DNA of 64,000 nucleotides, taken from positions 620,001 to 684,000 of the forward strand of contig OZ251249.1 of NCBI GenBank assembly GCA_965240325.2. The letters run 5' to 3'. Made by a program: the position numbers and the translations under genes. Origin of the DNA: Rebecca billardiae RCC1528 (lineage: Eukaryota > Protista > Haptophyta). Positions 3,490 to 22,779 of the stretch are shown piece by piece (positions within the stretch are counted from its first letter, which is position 1; every line of letters starts with the position of its first letter). The notes beneath the pieces were generated by a model that did no database searches, was not told the DNA's origin, and saw nothing but the letters and a program-made list of their open reading frames with translations.

Positions 3490-3972
3490 CTATCCCGCTA
3501 GTTGCACGGCACCGTCCGCGGCGGCGGTCTCTGCGTGGCACTCCGCCGGGAAGACGTGCTCCCCGCTCGGTCCGAGTGGCAGCGGGTGCTGCTCCACCGC
3601 GCTCCACGGGATGGGGCGGGAGAACCAGATGTGCTGGCACCCGTCGGCCAGCTGCTGGACGACGTAGTGAGGGGCCTCGCCTTCGGCTGCGCTGCCGAGG
3701 GCCGCAGGCGGCGGCGCACCGCGCTCAGCGGGCTCCACGTCCACGCGGCCGGGCAAGGTGATGTGCAGCAGCACGACGTCTGCCCGACCCTTGAAGAACA
3801 TGGAGGCGACCGTGCGCACCATCACGCCGTCGCTCGCGTGGATGAAGCCGTCGGTGCGATCGAGCTCGCTGCCCTGCCCAAGCGAGCCAGACTGGGTCCA
3901 TGCGGCAGCGTCGTCTGCAGTGGCGATCTTCCAAATCGCCGAGGGCGGAGGCTGAACAGACCGCGGCGGCAT
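3490..3972 (-). CDS. DUF952 domain-containing protein
   Basis: IWKI...W...G.GSELDRTDGFIHAS...VASMFFKGRADVVLLHI matches the DUF952 pattern. ATG at 3972 (MPPRSV); an upstream ATG near 4044 is possible. Confidence 0.75.
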   Translation of the reverse strand: MPPRSVQPPPSAIWKIATADDAAAWTQSGSLGQGSELDRTDGFIHASDGVMVRTVASMFFKGRADVVLLHITLPGRVDVEPAERGAPPPAALGSAAEGEAPHYVVQQLADGCQHIWFSRPIPWSAVEQHPLPLGPSGEHVFPAECHAETAAADGAVQLAG

Positions 3973-4246
3973 CGTGGACGTGGGTTCGCCCTTCTCGAGT
4001 TCTCGCTTGGCTGAGAAAAGATCATTGTCTACTTGTATTCGCATCTGACTCACTCAATTCTGAGACTACGGCCGTTTGAGACGTTCGACGAGGCGGGCAG
4101 GCGGCCCGGCGGCGGCGACTCACAGTTTAACAGTACTACTGAGTCACACTCTCGCGAGACGCGACTGAGTCTGATTCAACCGTTGCTACTGGCTAACGAC
4201 TAACGTGGCTACTGCCTCAACTCAGGCCGTACTGCGCACGGGCCGG

Positions 4247-4963
4247 TCAACTCTTGCCTCCAGGCGCGCTGCTCGCCGGCAGCCCGCGCTTGAGCACCGT
4301 CCAGAACTCGTCCGGGTCGATGAGGCTGTTCTTGTCCAGATCTGCCGCGTGGATCATCTCCATGATCTCCTCGTCCGTCATGTTCTCTCCGAGCTCGCGC
4401 GCGACGCGCTTGAGGTTGTCAAAGCTGATCTTGCCTGTGCCCTCGTGGTCGAACTGGCGGAAGGCCTTGCGCACGTCCTCCTTCGAGTCGCGCTCGGACA
4501 TCTTGGTGACCAGCAGCTCGAGGAACTCGTTGAAGTCGATGCTGCCTGCGCGGCGACGCGACAGGAGGCGGCGGCAGCGGGCGGCGAGCTGCTGAGCACA
4601 CGGGCGCGCCTGCGGCCGCGCACGCGGGTCGCGCACCTTGGCCGGTCTTGTCGACGGCGGCGATCATTTCCTTCACTTCCTCCTTGCGCGGCTCGAAGCC
4701 AAGGGCGCGCAGGATCACCTTGAGCGCGTTCGCATCGATGACGCCCTCGCCGTGCGAGTCGAAGAGATCAAACGCTTGTCTGATCTCCGTGCGCTGCTGC
4801 GTGGTGAGCTCGAGGCGCCCGCCCTTGGCATCGGAGCGGCCGCCGGCCTTTGTCTGCACGCGCGCGCGGCGGGCGACGCGAAGGGCACGCGTGATGCACG
4901 CCACACCCACCGGGCCGGCCAACTTTGCGCAAGTAACCGCCCGCGCAGCTGGCGCACCGCCAT
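4247..4963 (-). CDS. Centrin (EF-hand Ca2+-binding protein); exons approx. 4963-4907, 4853-4637, 4545-4247
   Basis: [18 protein letters not shown]...[22 protein letters not shown] and [28 protein letters not shown] are centrin hallmarks. GT-AG intron 4636-4546 joins DKTGQG|SIDFNEF. First exon is uncertain. Confidence 0.9.
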
Positions 4964-5239: not shown

Positions 5240-8020
5240 ATGGGCAACACCTCGTCGAACCCGCCGAGCAAGAAGTCGGAGGAGGCCACGAAGAAGCGCG
5301 TCGTCGTGCTCGGCGCCGGCGCCGGCGGCCTCTGCATGGCGCGCATCGCCGACGCCGCGGGGTTCCAGACGACGGTCGTGGAGCGCCGCCCGGGCTCCGT
5401 GTGGAAGCCCGGCGGCCCGAAGGCGATCATCGACCCGGAGTGGGCGATGGGCAAGGGCCTCGTGCCGCTGCGCAACGTGCTCGAGGGCGCGAGCAGCACG
5501 CGCATCCAGGACGAGGCCGTCCGCCTCGACGCCGCGGGCAAGAAGGTCGAGCTCGCGTCGGGCAAGGTTCTGGAGTACGATTACTGCGTGCTCGCGGTCG
5601 GCGCGCAGAACGCGAGCCCGTGCGACCCGCCGCCCGAGTGCACGACGGTGGCGGCGATGAAGGCGCACTACCGCGCCGTCGACGCCGCGATCCGCCGCGC
5701 CTCGCGCATCGTCGTCGTCGGCGGCGGCGCGGTCGGCATCGAGGTGGCGGGCGCGTGCCGCGAGGCGGCGCAGCCCAAGACGAGCGTCACCGTCGTGCAC
5801 TCGGGCGAGAAGCCGCTGGACGTGAGCCTGCCGGGCGCGAACCCGAAGCAGATGGCGAACTTCCAGGACCGCATCGTCAAGCTCTGCGCCGACGCGAACA
5901 TCCAGCTCGTCCTCGGCGCGCGGTGCACCAACCTCTCACCCGACGACTGCCCTGGTGGCTTCAAGGCTTCGGCCACGCCCTTCGGCGTGCAGCTCACGAC
6001 GGGGTCGTCGCTCGAGGCGGACCTCGTGCTCTGGTGCGTGGGCGCGCGCTCGAACGCGCCGCACCTCGTCGCGCCCGAGGCCCTCGACCCGCGCTCCAAG
6101 CTCATCAAGGTCGACCGCTCGCTCCGCGTCGACGGGATGAGTGACGTGTTCGCCATCGGCGACTGCACCAACCTGCCCGAGCCCAAGCTGTCGCTCTCGG
6201 CGGGGAGCGGCTCGATCAAGGGGCCGGGCATGCCTTCGGGGCACGCGGACGTCGTGCTGGCCAACCTGCTCGCGCTCGCTGCGGGCAAGCAGCCGTCGAG
6301 CGAGTGGCCGCCGCCGAAGCGCGTGAACTCTCTGATCCCCATCACCAAGTCTGCTGGCGCGGCCGCGCTCGGCGCGCCAAACTTTCTCGGCGCGATGAAG
6401 GCGACGAAGCTGCACTACTTCGCGCCGTCGATGTGGCACGCGGCGCGCGCGGGCAAGTTCGGCGTGAGCCCCGTCACCGCCGCGGACGAGCTCGGCCGCG
6501 TGCAGACCAAGCTGAGCGCGCCGTCGCTCGGCGCGCCGCGGCTCACGCCTGCCGAGGCCGCGGCTGAGCAGGAGCAGCGCGAGGCGGCGCTGCGCGAGGT
6601 GCGCGACGTCGCGCCGCAAGCGGAGGAGGCCGAGGCGGACGAGGCGGCGGCGAGCGAGCTCGCCGAGGCGTACACCAAGATGAGCGAGCCCGGCGACGAC
6701 CACGCCGACGTCGCCGCTCTCAGCACGCCGCGCGGCGACAAGGCCAAGATCGCGATCATCTACTACTCGATGTACGGGCACGTCCGCACGATGGCGGACG
6801 CGGTGAAGAAGGGCGTGGAGAGCTCCGGGCTGGCGAGCGTGGAGATCTTCCAGCTGCCCGAGACGCTCCCCGCCGAGGTGCTCGCCAAGATGGGCGCGCC
6901 GCCCAAGGCCGACCACCCGGTCGCGACGGTCGAGATGCTCCCGGACTTTGACGGCTTCCTCTTCGGCCTGCCGGGGCGGTACGGCTCGTACCCGGCGCAG
7001 TTCAAGGCGTTCTGGGACGCCACGGGCGGGCACTGGGCCGCGGGCAAGCTGGTGGGCAAGCCGGTCGGCGTGTTCGTCTCGACGGGCACGCAGAACGGCG
7101 GGCAGGAGACCATCGGCCTCACCGCCATCCCGCAGTTTGCGCACCACGGGATGGTGTTCGTTCCGCTCGGCTACCAGGACCCGCGCGTCTTCTCGTACGA
7201 CGAGCCGCACGGCGCGTCGCCGTACGGCGCGGGCACGCTCGCCGGGCCGGACGGCTCGCGGCAGCCGTCGGCGCTCGAGCTCGGCGTCGCCGAGACGCAG
7301 GGCACCAAGTTCGCCGCCGTCGCCGCTAAGGCCGTCGCGCTGCCCAAGGCTCTCGCGTCGAGCGCCGAGCACGCCGCGGCCGCGCTCTCGGCGCTGTCCG
7401 TCTCGGGCGCGCGCCCGCAGCTCAAGATCGCGATCATCTACTACTCGATGTACGGGCACATCCGAACGATGGCGGACGCGGTGAAGACCGGCGTCGAAGC
7501 CTCCGGGCTCGCCACGGCCGAGATCTTCCAGCTGCCCGAGACGCTCCCCGCCGAGGTGCTCGCCAAGATGGGCGCGCCGCCCAAGGCCGACCACCCGGTC
7601 GCGACGGTCGAGATGCTCCCGGACTTTGACGGCTTCCTCTTCGGCCTGCCGGGGCGGTACGGCTCGTACCCGGCGCAGTTCAAGGCGTTCTGGGACGCCA
7701 CGGGCGGGCACTGGGCCGCGGGCAAGCTGGTGGGCAAGCCGGTCGGCGTGTTCGTCTCGACGGGCACGCAGAACGGCGGGCAGGAGACCATCGGCCTCAC
7801 CGCCATCCCGCAGTTTGCGCACCACGGGATGGTGTTCGTGCCGCTCGGGTACCAGGACCCGCGCGTCTTCTCGTACGACGAGCCGCACGGCGCGTCGCCG
7901 TACGGCGCGGGCACGCTCGCCGGGCCGGACGGCTCGCGGCAGCCGTCGGCGCTCGAGCTCGGCGTCGCCGAGACGCAGGGCACCAAGTTTGCCGTCACGG
8001 TGTCCAAGCTCGCTGCGTGA
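5240..8020 (+). CDS. Fusion: AIFM2/FSP1-like FAD-dependent NAD(P)H oxidoreductase plus two WrbA-type flavodoxin-like NAD(P)H:quinone oxidoreductase domains (926 aa, intronless)
   Basis: N-terminal domain: VVVLGAGAGG, YDYCVLAVGA, IVVVGGGAVGIEVAG, VFAIGDC. Each WrbA copy: KIAIIYYSMYGH, FKAFWDATGGHWAAGKLVGKPVGVFVSTGTQNGGQET, HHGMVFVPLGY, GASPYGAGTLAGPDGSRQPS. Confidence 0.93.
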   Translation: MGNTSSNPPSKKSEEATKKRVVVLGAGAGGLCMARIADAAGFQTTVVERRPGSVWKPGGPKAIIDPEWAMGKGLVPLRNVLEGASSTRIQDEAVRLDAAGKKVELASGKVLEYDYCVLAVGAQNASPCDPPPECTTVAAMKAHYRAVDAAIRRASRIVVVGGGAVGIEVAGACREAAQPKTSVTVVHSGEKPLDVSLPGANPKQMANFQDRIVKLCADANIQLVLGARCTNLSPDDCPGGFKASATPFGVQLTTGSSLEADLVLWCVGARSNAPHLVAPEALDPRSKLIKVDRSLRVDGMSDVFAIGDCTNLPEPKLSLSAGSGSIKGPGMPSGHADVVLANLLALAAGKQPSSEWPPPKRVNSLIPITKSAGAAALGAPNFLGAMKATKLHYFAPSMWHAARAGKFGVSPVTAADELGRVQTKLSAPSLGAPRLTPAEAAAEQEQREAALREVRDVAPQAEEAEADEAAASELAEAYTKMSEPGDDHADVAALSTPRGDKAKIAIIYYSMYGHVRTMADAVKKGVESSGLASVEIFQLPETLPAEVLAKMGAPPKADHPVATVEMLPDFDGFLFGLPGRYGSYPAQFKAFWDATGGHWAAGKLVGKPVGVFVSTGTQNGGQETIGLTAIPQFAHHGMVFVPLGYQDPRVFSYDEPHGASPYGAGTLAGPDGSRQPSALELGVAETQGTKFAAVAAKAVALPKALASSAEHAAAALSALSVSGARPQLKIAIIYYSMYGHIRTMADAVKTGVEASGLATAEIFQLPETLPAEVLAKMGAPPKADHPVATVEMLPDFDGFLFGLPGRYGSYPAQFKAFWDATGGHWAAGKLVGKPVGVFVSTGTQNGGQETIGLTAIPQFAHHGMVFVPLGYQDPRVFSYDEPHGASPYGAGTLAGPDGSRQPSALELGVAETQGTKFAVTVSKLAA
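6746..7989 (+). repeat. Intragenic tandem duplication of the WrbA domain (6746-7311 / 7424-7989, offset 678 bp)
   Basis: Direct comparison: about 470 bp of the two copies are almost identical at DNA level. Confidence 0.95.
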
Positions 8021-8368
8021 GTGTGCCGAGCGAAGGCTGCCGCTGGCTCCCTCAGACTAGACTGTCGAGCGGCCGCACGTGCGAATTGGTCGATTGCCGC
8101 GGATGATTTTGCCCTTAGCTTTCATGCTGCGCTACCGTGCCGCCATCGTGCTTCCAGGGGCCCTCCAGTTCGGCGTCTGGACGCATGAACTCGAGTTCTG
8201 TTCGCTGCACCGGACGCGCAACGTATTACGTACCGGTACTTACTTGTACGGGTACAAACCAAGCGCTGACGTGTCGCGCCTGCCATCGTGTGCATCTAGA
8301 CTCGCGCGACACCGGCTGAGACGTGCGCGGCCCGTGGCCGGCAAACGGCGCGCCTCCGGACGCGCTGC

Positions 8369-10363
8369 ATGGCGCTCGCTGCGCTACTCTGCGCACTGCA
8401 CGCGGCCCCAGGCGGCAGCAGATGCGTCGCCTTCCGGCGGACCGGAGGTGCGCCGCAGCGACGGCGCACGGCGCGCGCGCCGGCCCGTCGCGCGCGCGCG
8501 CTGACTGGTGCGCGCGTGCTCGATCGGGCGCACGCCACGCGCAGGCTGCTCTCCCGATGGGCCCCGCGAGCCGGCCGGTGACCTGACGTGCGCCTCGACC
8601 GTGTCAGCGCGCATCAGCGGGTACTGCGAGTGCGAGGGCGGCCGCCAGACCTCGCACGTCGACTGCCGGCACTCGCCGATGCGGTGCGATCTCGAGTGCG
8701 CAAAGCGGCCGATGCCGCGGTGGCGGGACGACGTGGACGACGACATGGAGTGGGTGCGCGGGACGAAGTGGAACTGGAACCGCTGGCGTGACGTGGAGCT
8801 GCGGTACGACGGCTCCTTCTGGGCGCCCAACTGCGACCCAGACCAAAACCCGGAGTGCAAATGGACCGCACACTCAGGCTATGTGTACGTCAAGTGGGGC
8901 AAGGACGGGCTGCACGAGCTCGAGCCGTCGGCCGACCGCAAGCGGCTCACCGGCTTCCGCGAGGACGGCGACCCGTGCACCGCGGGCTTCGTCGAGAAGC
9001 TCGAGGAGGAGCTCGACCTGTACGACGCGCTCGGGCTCGAGCCGGACGCGGACACAAAAGAAATTAAATCCGCGTACCGGAAATTGAGCCTCAAGTACCA
9101 CCCGGACAAGAACCCGGGGGACGAGGAGGCGAACGTGAAGTTCCAGGCGGTCGCGGCGGCGTACGAGGTGCTCAGTGACCCGGACAAGCGCATCCTGTAC
9201 GACACGGGTGCGTGCGCGCGCGCGCGCGCGTGCCATGTGCGCCCGCGTGCGCGAATGCGCTCCCGCGGCGTAGGGCGCGGCCGCATGGTGCCCTCCCGCG
9301 CCGCTGTGCTGAGCTTGGTGGTCGGTCGCTGGCGTGTGCGCGCGCGTGTGCGCGCGCGCGCGCAGGGGGCATGGAGGCCGTGCAGGAGGCCGCCAAGGAG
9401 GAGGCCGGCGGCGGCGGAGGGATGGACCCCTTCGCCATGTTCTTTGGCGGCGGCGGCGGCGGCGGCGGCGGGCGCGGCGGCGGGCGCGGCGGCTCCACGA
9501 CGCGCGGCCCCGACGTGAAAATGAATTTCGACGTCTCGCTCGAGGATATGTACTCGGGCGGCAGCGTGTCCGCGCGGATCAAGCGGCGCGTGGTGTGCCG
9601 CGGCTGCCGCAAGGCCGACACGCCCGAGCGCAAGGCGCGCTGCGCCAAGTGCGGCCGCTGCCCCAACGAGGTGCGCCAGCGTGCGCCTTGATGGCCTCGC
9701 TCGCGACGCGCGGCGCGGCGCGGCGCGCGTGCACGCGATAAACGGTCGTGGCCGTCCGGCTGCGGCCGCGGCTGCACTGCCGTCTTCGAGCCAGCGGCGC
9801 GCGCGTCGCTGAGCCGCGCGCCCCGCGTGCACACCTCGCCCCGCGCCGCGCGCGCGCAGGTGCGCATGGTGCAGCGGCAGATGGGCCCTGGGATGATTGT
9901 GCAGCAGCAGGAGGAGGTCGCATCGAAAGAAAAGTGCATGGAGGAGGAGACGACGCTCGACGCGGTGATCGAGAAGGGGATGGGCGCGGGGCAGGAGATC
10001 GTGTTCGAGCGCATGTCCGAGCAGCGGCCCAAGCAGATCCCGGGCGACGTCATCCTCACCATCAGGCAAAAGCAGCACTCAACTTTTACCCGGCAGGGGA
10101 ACGACCTGCACGCGTCTCTGACCATCTCGCTGCGCGAGGCGCTGCTCGGGTTCGAGCGCACGATGGCGCACCTCGACGGGCACGAGGTGAAGGTGCGCGC
10201 GGCGAAGGTGACCAAGCCGGGCGACGTGATCAAGGTGCGCGGCGAGGGCATGCCGCTGCACAACTTCGCGTCCGAGTTCGGAGACCTGTACGTCACGATC
10301 ACGATCGCGTTCCCCGAGTCGCTGACGGAGGAGCAGGCGGGCGTGATGACGGCGCACTTCTGA
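8369..10363 (+). CDS. ERdj3/DNAJB11-like DnaJ co-chaperone with extra N-terminal domains; exons 8369-8447, 8545-9207, 9366-9670, 9860-10363 (~516 aa)
   Basis: Signal-like [13 protein letters not shown] domain (DLYDALG...[16 protein letters not shown]...[10 protein letters not shown]), G/F region, CRGC...[19 protein letters not shown]-terminal substrate-binding domain (PGDV...[10 protein letters not shown]...HLDG...GEGMP). The three GT-AG introns keep frame. Confidence 0.9.
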
Positions 10364-19893: not shown

Positions 19894-20079
19894 GCCTCCT
19901 GACGAGCGGGCGGCACGCGAGCGCTCAGCTCCCGGACCTGTCCAGCTGGGCCCACTGCCCCACTTGCTCAAGTCCGGGCGCGCGCGCTATCAAACGACTG
20001 CGCGGCGTCCGCTTCCGACTCTCCGCAGCAGAGCCCTCAGCGCAAGGGGGCCGCGGTCGTTGGCGTGGTCGCGAGCGCC

Positions 20080-20974
20080 ATGGATCTCGTCCAGCGCGGC
20101 GCGATCGCGCAGATGCGCGCGCAGACGCCGGAGCGCGGGCAGATCCTCCAGCTCATCGACATCCGCCACATCAAGGGCCCGGCCACCGGCGGCGCGAACG
20201 TCGGCGACCGGCTCCGGATCGTCCTGTCGGACGGCGAGTTCTTCCAGCAAGGCATGGTCGCGCAGCAGCTGCACGAGGAGGTGCGGCACTTCCCGCTGAA
20301 CTCGATCGTGCAGGTGGACCAGTGGAACGTCAACCACGTCGCCGGCCGGCTCATCGTCATCGTCACGGGCGTCAGCCTCGTCCAGCCCGGCGACACCGTC
20401 CAAGGGCGGATCGGAAACCCGGCGCCGTGCGACCAGGAGGGCGCCGCCGGCATGCCCGCGCAGCAGCAGCCGCCGGCGTCATACGCGCCCCCGCAGGTGG
20501 GCGCGCAGCCGCAACCGCAGCCGAACGCGTACGCCAACCAGCCGCCCGCGGGCTACGGCGCGCCGCAGAACGGCCACGGTCCGTACGGCGGCGGCGGCGC
20601 TCCGGGCCAGTACAACGGTGGCGGCTACCCGCAAGCGCCGCCGCAGCACGCGCCGATGCCGGCGTACCAGCAGCCGGACTCGTACCACGGCGGCGGTGGC
20701 GGCGGCGGCGGGTACGGCCAGCCGCAGCACCCGCCGCACCCGCAGGCGCCGTACGGCCAGCCGCCGCCGCCCGCGCAGGGCAACGGGTACGGCGGCGGCG
20801 GGCAGCCGTATGGGGGCGGCGGCGGTGGTGGCGGTGGCTATGGCGGTGGCGGGTACGGCGGCGGCGGCGGCGGCGGGCCGTACGGCGGCGGCGGCGGGTA
20901 CAACAACAACAACGCGTACGGTGGCGGCGGCGGCGCGCCGCCGCCGGCGCAGCACTTTGGCGGCGGCGGCGGCT

Positions 20975-21006
<32 letters not shown>

Positions 21007-21786
21007 TACGGCGGCGGTCCGATCGCCCGCAACAATGACGATGTCGTGACGATCCCGATCGGCGCGCTCAACCCGTACCAGAACCGCTGGGCGATCAAGG
21101 GGCGCGTGACGAAGAAGGGCGACAAGCGGAACTACTCGAACCAGCGCGGCGACGGCGTGCTCTTCTCCTTCACCCTCTGCGACGCCGACGGCGACATCCG
21201 CGTGACGGCCTTCAACGACGTCGCCACGCGGCTCTTTGACGCGATCGAGCTCGACGCCATCGTCGTCCTGCGCAACGGGCAGATCAAGGAGGCGAACGCG
21301 AAGTGGAACACGGCGTCGTCCAAGTACGAGATCACGGCGAGCCAGCAGACCGAGGTGCAGGTCCTCGCGGCCGACGCCGACGCGAGCATCCCCGTTGACC
21401 GTTACACGCTCGTGCGTATCTCGGAGCTCGAGATCCGCGAGGCGGAGTCCAAGGTGGACGTGATGGGCGTGCTCACGAGCGTGGGCGAGGTGGAGAACTT
21501 CACCTCGCGCGCGGGGAAGGAGCTGACGAAGCGGAACATCCGGCTGGCGGACGACTCGGCCTGCGCGATCGACGCGACGCTGTGGGGCGAGAAGGCCGCC
21601 GGCTTCTCCGGCCAGCCGGGCGAGGTGCTGGTGCTCAAGCAGGCGCGCGTCACGACATGGAACGGAAAGTCGCTCAACGCCGGCTTCGACGGCGACATGC
21701 GCCTGCACCCCGAGCACGAGCGCGCGCCGCAGCTGGTGGCGTGGTACAACGGCGGCGGCGCGGGCGCGGTGCGCTGCCTCTCCGAG

Positions 21787-21817
<31 letters not shown>

Positions 21818-22779
21818 TCAGCGCCGGCCTCAAGACCATCTCCGCCGTCCGCGACGAGAACATCGGCAACAACGGCACCACGGAGAACTGGTCGGTGCGC
21901 GCCGTCGTCTCCTCCTTCCCGCGCCAGCGCGACCCGTGGTACACGGCGTGCGGCTCGGGCACGTGCAAGAAGAAGGCGACGGGCGACGACGCGCAGGGCT
22001 GGAACTGCGAGGGCTGCGGGTGGAAGGGCGACGACTGCAGGCGGCGATACATCGGCCGTGTGCAGGTCGGAGACCACACCGGTGCGCCGCGGCGCGCGCT
22101 CGCGCGCCGTGCGCGTGCGCGCGCGTGCAGCTGATCGGGCTGTGCCGCGTGCCCGCCGCCCTCGGCGCGCAGGCACGATGTACGCGGACGTCTTCGACGA
22201 GGCGATGATCCTGCTGATGGGCGGCACCTCCGCCGACGACCTCTCCCGCCTCAAGGACACCTCGGAGAAGGCCTACTCCACCAAGCTGGACGACGAGGTG
22301 CGTCCGACTCCGCCCGGCCGGCGCGCGCGCGCCCGGCTCGCGCGCGTCCCTGGCGCGTGGCGGGGAGGCCACGCCTGCGCTGTGCCAATGCGCGCCGTGC
22401 CGCGCCCGCGCCGCGGTGTGCGCAGGGCTTCAAGCGGTACACGCTCTCCATGCGCTCCTCGCAGGACACGTGGTGCGCGCAGCCGCGAGGCGCGCGCGCG
22501 GCGCGCGGCGTGTGCTGCGTTGGGCACGCGCGCTGTGCGCGCGTGGGCACGCGCGCGCGGAGCGGTTGGGCGCTGTGCGCCGCGAGGAGCGAGCGCTGCG
22601 CGGCTGCTGCCGCCCGCCTCCTGACCGTGCGCGCGCCCGCGCGCCGCCGCCGCAACCGCCGCACGCGCAGGCAAGGCGAGGCGCGCACCCGGCACCAGAT
22701 CACAGCCATTCAGCCAGCAAACGTTCTCGACGAGGCGAGGCAGATGCTGGCCGAGCTGCAGCAGATGCGCCTGGCCTAG
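20080..22779 (+). CDS. RPA1: Replication protein A 70-kDa subunit; exons 20080-22081, 22173-22297, 22426-22472, 22671-22779 (~760 aa)
   Basis: N-terminal OB fold (RLRIVLSDGEFF), DBD-A (PIGALNPYQNRWAIKGRVTKKG...GVLFSFTL.D..GDIRVTAFN), DBD-B (VDVMGV...KRNIRLADDS...TLWGE), DBD-C zinc finger (WYTAC..GTCKKK...CEGC). Introns keep frame. Confidence 0.95.

Follow-up and report, generated by a model that had tools for sequence, protein, structure and literature searches.

Does the haptophyte Rebecca billardiae RCC1528 carry two unrelated families of quinone reductases on one polypeptide chain, and if so, how would such a protein work? This question is raised by an open reading frame (ORF) of 926 codons in a stretch of 64,000 nucleotides (assembly GCA_965240325.2, contig OZ251249.1, positions 620,001 to 684,000), here called the window and numbered from its first letter. 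The ORF joins a domain of the FSP1/AIFM2 type, which uses flavin adenine dinucleotide (FAD), to two tandem domains of the WrbA type, which use flavin mononucleotide (FMN). Our analysis indicates that the gene is probably a genuine fusion, in which two membrane-tethered NAD(P)H:quinone reductase modules would act in parallel and share one myristoyl anchor. Domain identities, motifs, coding continuity, the rarity of the architecture and the acylation motifs of the relatives were computed; from these we infer myristoylation, substrates, oligomerisation and an antioxidant role.

The coding sequence extends from 5240 to 8020 on the forward strand. It opens with an ATG in the context GCCGCCATGG and runs unbroken through 926 codons to a TGA stop, with no intron needed. 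Two in-frame stops are located 23-24 codons upstream of the ATG, and no further ATG occurs in that gap. The window has a GC content of 70%, and long chance ORFs are frequent. Hence, an open frame alone proves little in this DNA. The codon periodicity was decisive. Over the ORF the GC content by codon position 1/2/3 was 0.69/0.52/0.97, and in 50-codon windows the GC content of the third position (GC3) was 0.94-0.96 throughout, including the linker (residues 426-500). No periodicity was found in the 300-nt flanks (0.62/0.63/0.57 and 0.68/0.62/0.53), and in a six-frame scan the ORF was the longest continuous block of high GC3 in the 64-kb window. The 926-codon ORF is therefore not a chance product of GC-rich DNA. 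On the opposite strand a second ORF of 650 codons, 5936-7888 (-), lies over the same gene; it showed no separate coding periodicity. Its sequence marks it as a side effect of GC-rich codon usage, and ORF length is misleading in this genome. The splice-donor-like GTGAGT at 8017-8022, which contains the stop TGA, was considered as a continuation of the ORF and rejected: the second WrbA copy ends with KLAA and a stop, as does the stand-alone homologue P0188. Since the protein ends like stand-alone homologues, the hexamer was judged to be coincidental.

The N-terminal part of the protein is, by sequence, profile and predicted fold, an FSP1/AIFM2-type FAD and NAD(P)H quinone oxidoreductase domain (residues 20-419, 5297-6496, +). 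Pfam Pyr_redox_2 was matched at residues 20-314 with an expect value (E) of 4.5e-35. In a comparison of the single sequence with solved structures FSP1 was ranked first (E 6e-23), followed by rubredoxin reductase (1e-10). A family profile of 19 members, comprising the query and 18 homologues, aligned with FSP1 chains at E 1e-78 (profile positions 5-378 onto chain positions 7-367), and the best chain other than FSP1 reached 1e-24. The AlphaFold model of residues 1-505 had a predicted local distance difference test (pLDDT) above 90 over most of residues 10-420. With this model of the N-terminal domain, ranks 1-6 of the Foldseek search were all FSP1/AIFM2 chains (TMt 0.73-0.87); type II NADH dehydrogenases (NDH-2) and sulfide:quinone reductases ranked below them.

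The motifs known from FSP1 are largely present. For FSP1 the GxGxxGxE, WxxG and GD motifs and the proton-transfer residues Glu160 and Lys355 were listed as essential after mutagenesis (PMC10643123). The FAD Rossmann motif GAGAGG is located at residues 25-30, and Glu48 in VVERR aligns with an aspartate of FSP1 (human Asp41). The NAD(P)H motif GxGxxGxE (human Glu156) corresponds to GGGAVGIE at residues 161-168, in which G161, G162, G163, G166 and E168 are invariant across the family. The WxxG motif (human Gly244) is WCVG at residues 265-268 and the GD motif (human Asp285, Cys286) is GDC at residues 307-309; G268, G307 and D308 are invariant as well. Lys387 takes the position of Lys355 in the profile alignment and is conserved in at least 90% of the members. 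Compared with animal FSP1/AIFM2 (PDB 8wik, 8jsc, 9ift), the query shares the fold of two dinucleotide-binding domains and a C-terminal domain (TMt 0.85-0.87), these motifs and the MGxxxS start. In contrast, sequence identity is about 22-27%, about 11 extra residues follow the EPKL motif in the query, and the query carries a C-terminal extension of 500 residues with two WrbA domains, which FSP1 lacks.

The protein starts with MGNTSSN (5240-5260, +), which agrees with the N-myristoylation consensus G-{EDRKHPFYW}-x2-[STAGCN]-{P} through Gly2 and Ser6. A basic patch follows, with KK at residues 11-12 and KKR at 18-20. An MGxxxS start is common to the query, P0014 (MGNNTSS), P0001 (MGGVPSS) and the first exon of locus L005 (MGGGSSK), so that the motif is kept in the close homologues whose N-terminus could be read. 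Among more distant members of the FSP1-like family five start with MG, two of these with a nearby cysteine. FSP1 itself is myristoylated at a consensus of the MGxxxS type and reduces quinones with NAD(P)H; exchange of Gly2 for alanine (G2A) abolishes localisation and function (PMC10643123).

The C-terminal half consists of two domains which, by sequence and predicted fold, are of the WrbA/Pst2 type and intact. Domain 1, a type IV NAD(P)H:quinone oxidoreductase domain, comprises residues 501-699 (6740-7336, +), and domain 2 comprises residues 727-926 (7418-8017, +). The linker between them, residues 700-726 (7337-7417, +), contains neither a methionine nor a stop and was modelled with a pLDDT of about 59-75. 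Pfam FMN_red/Flavodoxin_1 was found twice. The NCBIfam equivalogs NF002999 (430 bits, cut-off 141) and TIGR01755 (424 bits, cut-off 132.5) matched two stretches each, the best of them residues 502-697 against profile positions 1-196 of 197. Yeast Pst2 (5mp4) was the closest solved structure (E 1e-64, 54% identity over the modelled domain). Both copies retain all 41 of the columns that do not vary among 34 homologues, and YYSMYGH, PGRYG, STGTQNGGQE, HHGM and SPYGAGT each occur twice; the SMYGH loop of domain 1 is formed by residues 510-514. The two copies differ in five residues near the domain start and four at the C-terminal end, none of them at invariant positions. In the AlphaFold model the WrbA fold was recovered with TMt 0.92 to Pst2 5mp4 and 0.95 to E. 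coli WrbA 3b6i. Saccharomyces cerevisiae Pst2, the flavodoxin-like proteins of Candida albicans and bacterial WrbA thus share a full-length equivalog match and all invariant residues with the query. The fungal proteins and bacterial WrbA are, in contrast, single-domain chains of about 200 residues forming tetramers, and in the query the domain is doubled and placed behind another quinone reductase.

In the model of residues 495-926 (pLDDT 88.5) the two WrbA domains are packed compactly against each other, as a predicted intramolecular dimer, with a predicted template modelling score (pTM) of 0.88, a value which derives from an alignment with only four tandem rows and may partly reflect the known homo-oligomer interface of WrbA. 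WrbA is an obligate tetramer, each active site being built from three subunits (PMC3430622). The sequence-only reading had suggested that the tandem acts as a pseudo-dimer. The compact pair agrees with this suggestion, but on the evidence of that source such a pair would not be a complete WrbA on its own.

Between the FSP1-like and WrbA modules lies a linker rich in alanine and glutamate, residues 420-500 (6497-6739, +), with 20 Ala, 12 Glu and 6 Asp among its 81 residues. AlphaFold left residues 421-433 disordered and proposed a long helix for residues 437-482 at low confidence (pLDDT about 60-77). The C-terminal tail of P0016, a stand-alone homologue of the N-terminal domain, is likewise rich in these two residues. 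One uninterrupted 926-residue frame starting with MGNTSS, a Gly2/Ser6 myristoylation consensus, an AIFM2-like domain with two Rossmann motifs, an acidic helical linker and two complete WrbA domains had all been proposed from the letters of the DNA. Each of these elements was recovered here, the consensus as a motif and the linker by its composition, with the reservation on its helix given above.

The sequence-only reading had named no other case of this architecture, and the searches gave none. The stronger test was HMMER, run exhaustively against 1.84 billion cluster representatives, in which the two domain types never occurred on one protein. A chain carrying the two together should far outscore each of them alone, and the only matches above 300 bits were P0015 (the N-terminal domain alone) and P0040 (tandem WrbA alone); Pfam was applied to every long or multi-stretch match, and in none did Pyr_redox_2 occur together with FMN_red. 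A word-indexed search with the whole protein found none with both parts either. Its top matches were P0001, an FSP1-like domain with an aldo-keto reductase, and P0002, a tandem WrbA of Symbiodinium; fungal and plant gene models with WrbA joined to unrelated domains were also obtained. Scanning metagenome contigs with the junction peptide detected 14 loci, all matching the start of WrbA only. Furthermore, no report of this architecture or of a physical link between the FSP1 and WrbA families was found in the literature searched, in which a single paper treats FSP1, WrbA and ubiquinone together.

Some candidates for the same architecture were rejected on inspection. P0054 (749 aa) and P0150 (818 aa), the only long HMMER matches in several stretches, combine an FSP1-like/Pyr_redox_2 domain with a second Pyr_redox_2 domain and thus represent a duplicated FAD module. 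In P0042 the first 350 residues bear no relation to the FSP1-like domain. P0041 of Diacronema lutheri is not a fragment of a tandem or fused gene: it is complete, with an MGAACS start, a tether and a single WrbA domain, and its neighbours are unrelated.

A comparable case is P0001, a single ORF of 826 aa (L002:269-2749, +) with a GC3 of 0.99 throughout. Its FSP1-like domain belongs to the same clade as the query (53% identity), and the two proteins have in common a start of the MGxxxS type, a linker rich in alanine and, in the same frame, a C-terminal reductase that depends on NAD(P)H. In P0001 this reductase belongs to the aldo-keto reductases (PF00248) and not to the WrbA family. This fusion indicates that the FSP1-like clade accepts C-terminal NAD(P)H-enzyme partners. 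Since the searches gave no second case and the relatives carry the modules apart, the fusion of an FSP1-like domain with WrbA-WrbA is young and, as far as the searched collections go, unique to one genome.

Several observations weigh against a functional fusion, in addition to the small number of tandem rows behind the pTM. The position of human FSP1 Glu160 is occupied by alanine here and is non-acidic in the closest homologues, an acidic residue (Glu or Asp in the closest homologues) being found at +7, three positions further on. The fusion is known from one assembly only. Searches of public sequencing runs listed no RNA run, and the sole run with any of the stretch yielded one DNA contig of 202 nt (7958-8159). 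The relative P0014, 67% identical to the N-terminal domain, stands alone, with a stop and a 3' untranslated region on a short JGI contig; P0015 and P0016 are further stand-alone relatives. No WrbA gene was found within 10 kb of the intron-split FSP1-like gene of Pavlovales sp. CCMP2436 (L003), nor downstream of the FSP1-like gene in the flanks of L004 and L005. Finally, Met481 in the linker sits 20 residues ahead of WrbA domain 1 and could serve as the start of a separate WrbA-WrbA product.

This last point leads to the alternative that survives best, namely that the one ORF gives two products, an FSP1-like protein and a separate WrbA-WrbA protein, through an internal promoter and Met481, early polyadenylation or proteolysis of the linker. 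It would agree with the separate genes of the relatives and with the predicted exposure of the linker, and protease processing is known for a yeast flavodoxin-like protein (PMC7943015). However, the linker keeps full coding periodicity in the same frame over 81 codons without a stop, and chance ORFs in other frames lack such periodicity. A WrbA pair started at Met481 would also be without the acyl anchor present in related stand-alone WrbA proteins. We therefore consider two products rather unlikely.

The sequence-only reading had placed two unrelated quinone-reducing families on one membrane-anchored chain with FAD and FMN, possibly as an electron relay. The single ORF and the types of the domains were confirmed, whereas an obligate relay from NAD(P)H to the FAD of the FSP1-like domain, the FMN of WrbA and a final acceptor, following the logic of cytochrome P450 reductase, appears improbable. 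FAD and FMN modules do occur on one chain, and contact between the domains is conceivable in principle with a tether of about 80 residues. Diflavin reductases of the cytochrome P450 reductase type are true relays, with the order FMN then FAD, a FAD domain of the ferredoxin-reductase type and a flavodoxin domain without a nucleotide site of its own. The query resembles them in carrying both kinds of modules on one membrane-anchored chain (the anchor being predicted here), but both of its module types are complete stand-alone enzymes, and in close relatives each enzyme is a separate protein. The linker is neither conserved nor, for the most part, modelled with confidence, and neither WrbA copy has lost any of the residues that are invariant in stand-alone enzymes. 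WrbA follows a ping-pong mechanism, with NAD(P)H and then the quinone bound in an active site of its own (PMC3430622). FSP1-type enzymes, in turn, reduce quinones directly (PMC10643123).

The near-identity of the two WrbA copies requires an explanation of its own. The copies repeat with a period of 678 nt in a position-by-position comparison. Between 6842-7311 and 7520-7989 (+) there are two differences in 470 nt, both synonymous. In the first 100 nt of the domain 17 differences were counted, and the last 20 nt and the linkers differ as well. The sharp edges of the near-identical tract suggest an older duplication whose core was homogenised by gene conversion; a simple recent copy is harder to reconcile with them. 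Such a tract inside repeats otherwise diverged by about 17% would represent a clear case of intragenic gene conversion between tandem domains. Because its boundaries are sharp, each copy is tied to its place in the assembly by sequence that occurs only once. An assembly artefact with a wrong repeat number or junction, or a very young, non-functional and unexpressed chimera, is very improbable: cores with 99.6% identity over 470 nt are a hazard for an assembler, and the exact 926-aa protein is absent from a collection of 15 billion proteins, but the copies have distinct 5' parts, linkers and 3' ends as unique anchors, the FSP1-WrbA junction falls within unique sequence that shows coding periodicity, copy 2 has kept the ancestral KLAA-stop end, and the frame runs without frameshift or stop.

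In a tree of WrbA domains the two query copies were sisters (support 100/99) and grouped with D. lutheri, Pavlova gyrans and marine transcripts at moderate support (86/90). From the affinities of both domain types the organism would probably be placed among the pavlovophyte haptophytes. The tandem WrbA proteins of Symbiodinium, named 'Minor allergen Alt a 7' (P0040/P0316, 465 aa; P0002, 586 aa), also carry WrbA-WrbA on one chain, and P0040/P0316 begin with MGAGAS, a start of the myristoylation type, which is followed by some 60 residues of tether. Unlike the query they have no FSP1-like domain and are 50-53% identical to it. Since their copies fall into a separate clade (100/100), the tree places the origin of tandem WrbA at two or more independent events.

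The WrbA relatives often carry a putative N-terminal anchor of their own. Among the WrbA homologues gathered in the analysis, 27 of the 60 that are extended at the N-terminus by 35 residues or more start with MG, compared with two of the 139 without extension. The MG starts of the extended proteins are often MGC or MG with a nearby cysteine. Examples are MGGICS in P. gyrans and the MGAACS and MGAGAS starts named above; P0192, P0044, P0046 and P0049 are further homologues with such a motif. A low-complexity tether of 35-120 residues separates the acylation-type motif from the WrbA domain in many eukaryotic homologues. No paper treating WrbA together with myristoylation was found in the literature searched. 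FSP1-type and WrbA-type enzymes of these relatives thus appear, from their motifs, to be tethered to the membrane each by its own N-terminal acylation. In the query gene the FSP1-like module stands, by sequence, where the putative WrbA anchor is found in the relatives.

The surroundings of the gene are those of ordinary nuclear genes. Neighbours were a DUF952 gene, an EF-hand/centrin-like gene with several exons, a type I DnaJ with the J domain and the C-terminal domain on separate exons, and an RPA1-like gene of 698 codons in a single block; spans of neighbours are 3505-4922 (-), 8544-10360 (+) and 20014-22107 (+).

For the genuine fusion, the following mode of action is proposed. A putative myristoyl group on Gly2 would hold the FSP1-type FAD enzyme at the membrane, where this domain would reduce membrane quinones with NAD(P)H. 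From it the flexible tether of about 80 residues would bear the two WrbA domains, each an FMN enzyme with a separate active site, where NAD(P)H and quinone would bind one after the other. Because each module is a complete enzyme, the FAD and FMN modules would most likely act in parallel on the quinone pool, with no electron transfer between them; a relay is not needed. The fusion would set both enzyme types on one anchor at a fixed ratio of 1:2. Two chains probably pair through WrbA, because WrbA active sites need a tetramer (PMC3430622); the assembly would then contain two FSP1 domains, four WrbA domains and two myristates. Its likely output would be the regeneration of quinols that trap lipid radicals, together with the detoxification of quinones.

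The domain families are well known. The combination appears to be new, and it is not a new kind of system. The gene could serve as a compact test object for redundancy versus complementarity of FSP1-type and WrbA-type enzymes, as it offers separable modules in one intronless ORF, although a gene known from one genome only is of limited value for the present. FSP1 in animals and WrbA-like (flavodoxin-like) proteins in fungi have been proposed as analogues, both providing ubiquinol at non-mitochondrial membranes against lipid peroxidation (bioRxiv 10.1101/2023.04.27.538084; PMC4556627).

The FSP1 and WrbA families are unrelated, and a natural fusion is classic 'Rosetta stone' evidence for a shared place and pathway. 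Together with the acylation motifs of the WrbA relatives, the fusion argues that both enzyme types may be membrane-tethered partners in protists. An extension of this idea, which we regard as unlikely, is that N-acylated FSP1-type and N-acylated WrbA-type reductases form a widespread and unrecognised eukaryotic system for regenerating membrane quinols, of which the fusion would be the 'Rosetta stone'. The protein would then be a dimer bearing two anchors and six flavins, with a division of labour among its modules. If this were true, the division could be by quinone, by nucleotide, or between membrane-embedded and head-group-accessible substrates. Pavlovophytes are rich in eicosapentaenoic acid (EPA) and docosahexaenoic acid (DHA). 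Keeping membrane quinols reduced and detoxifying quinones would be a plausible role of the protein in these algae, and if the wider system existed, it would be needed to protect their EPA/DHA-rich membranes from ferroptosis-like death.

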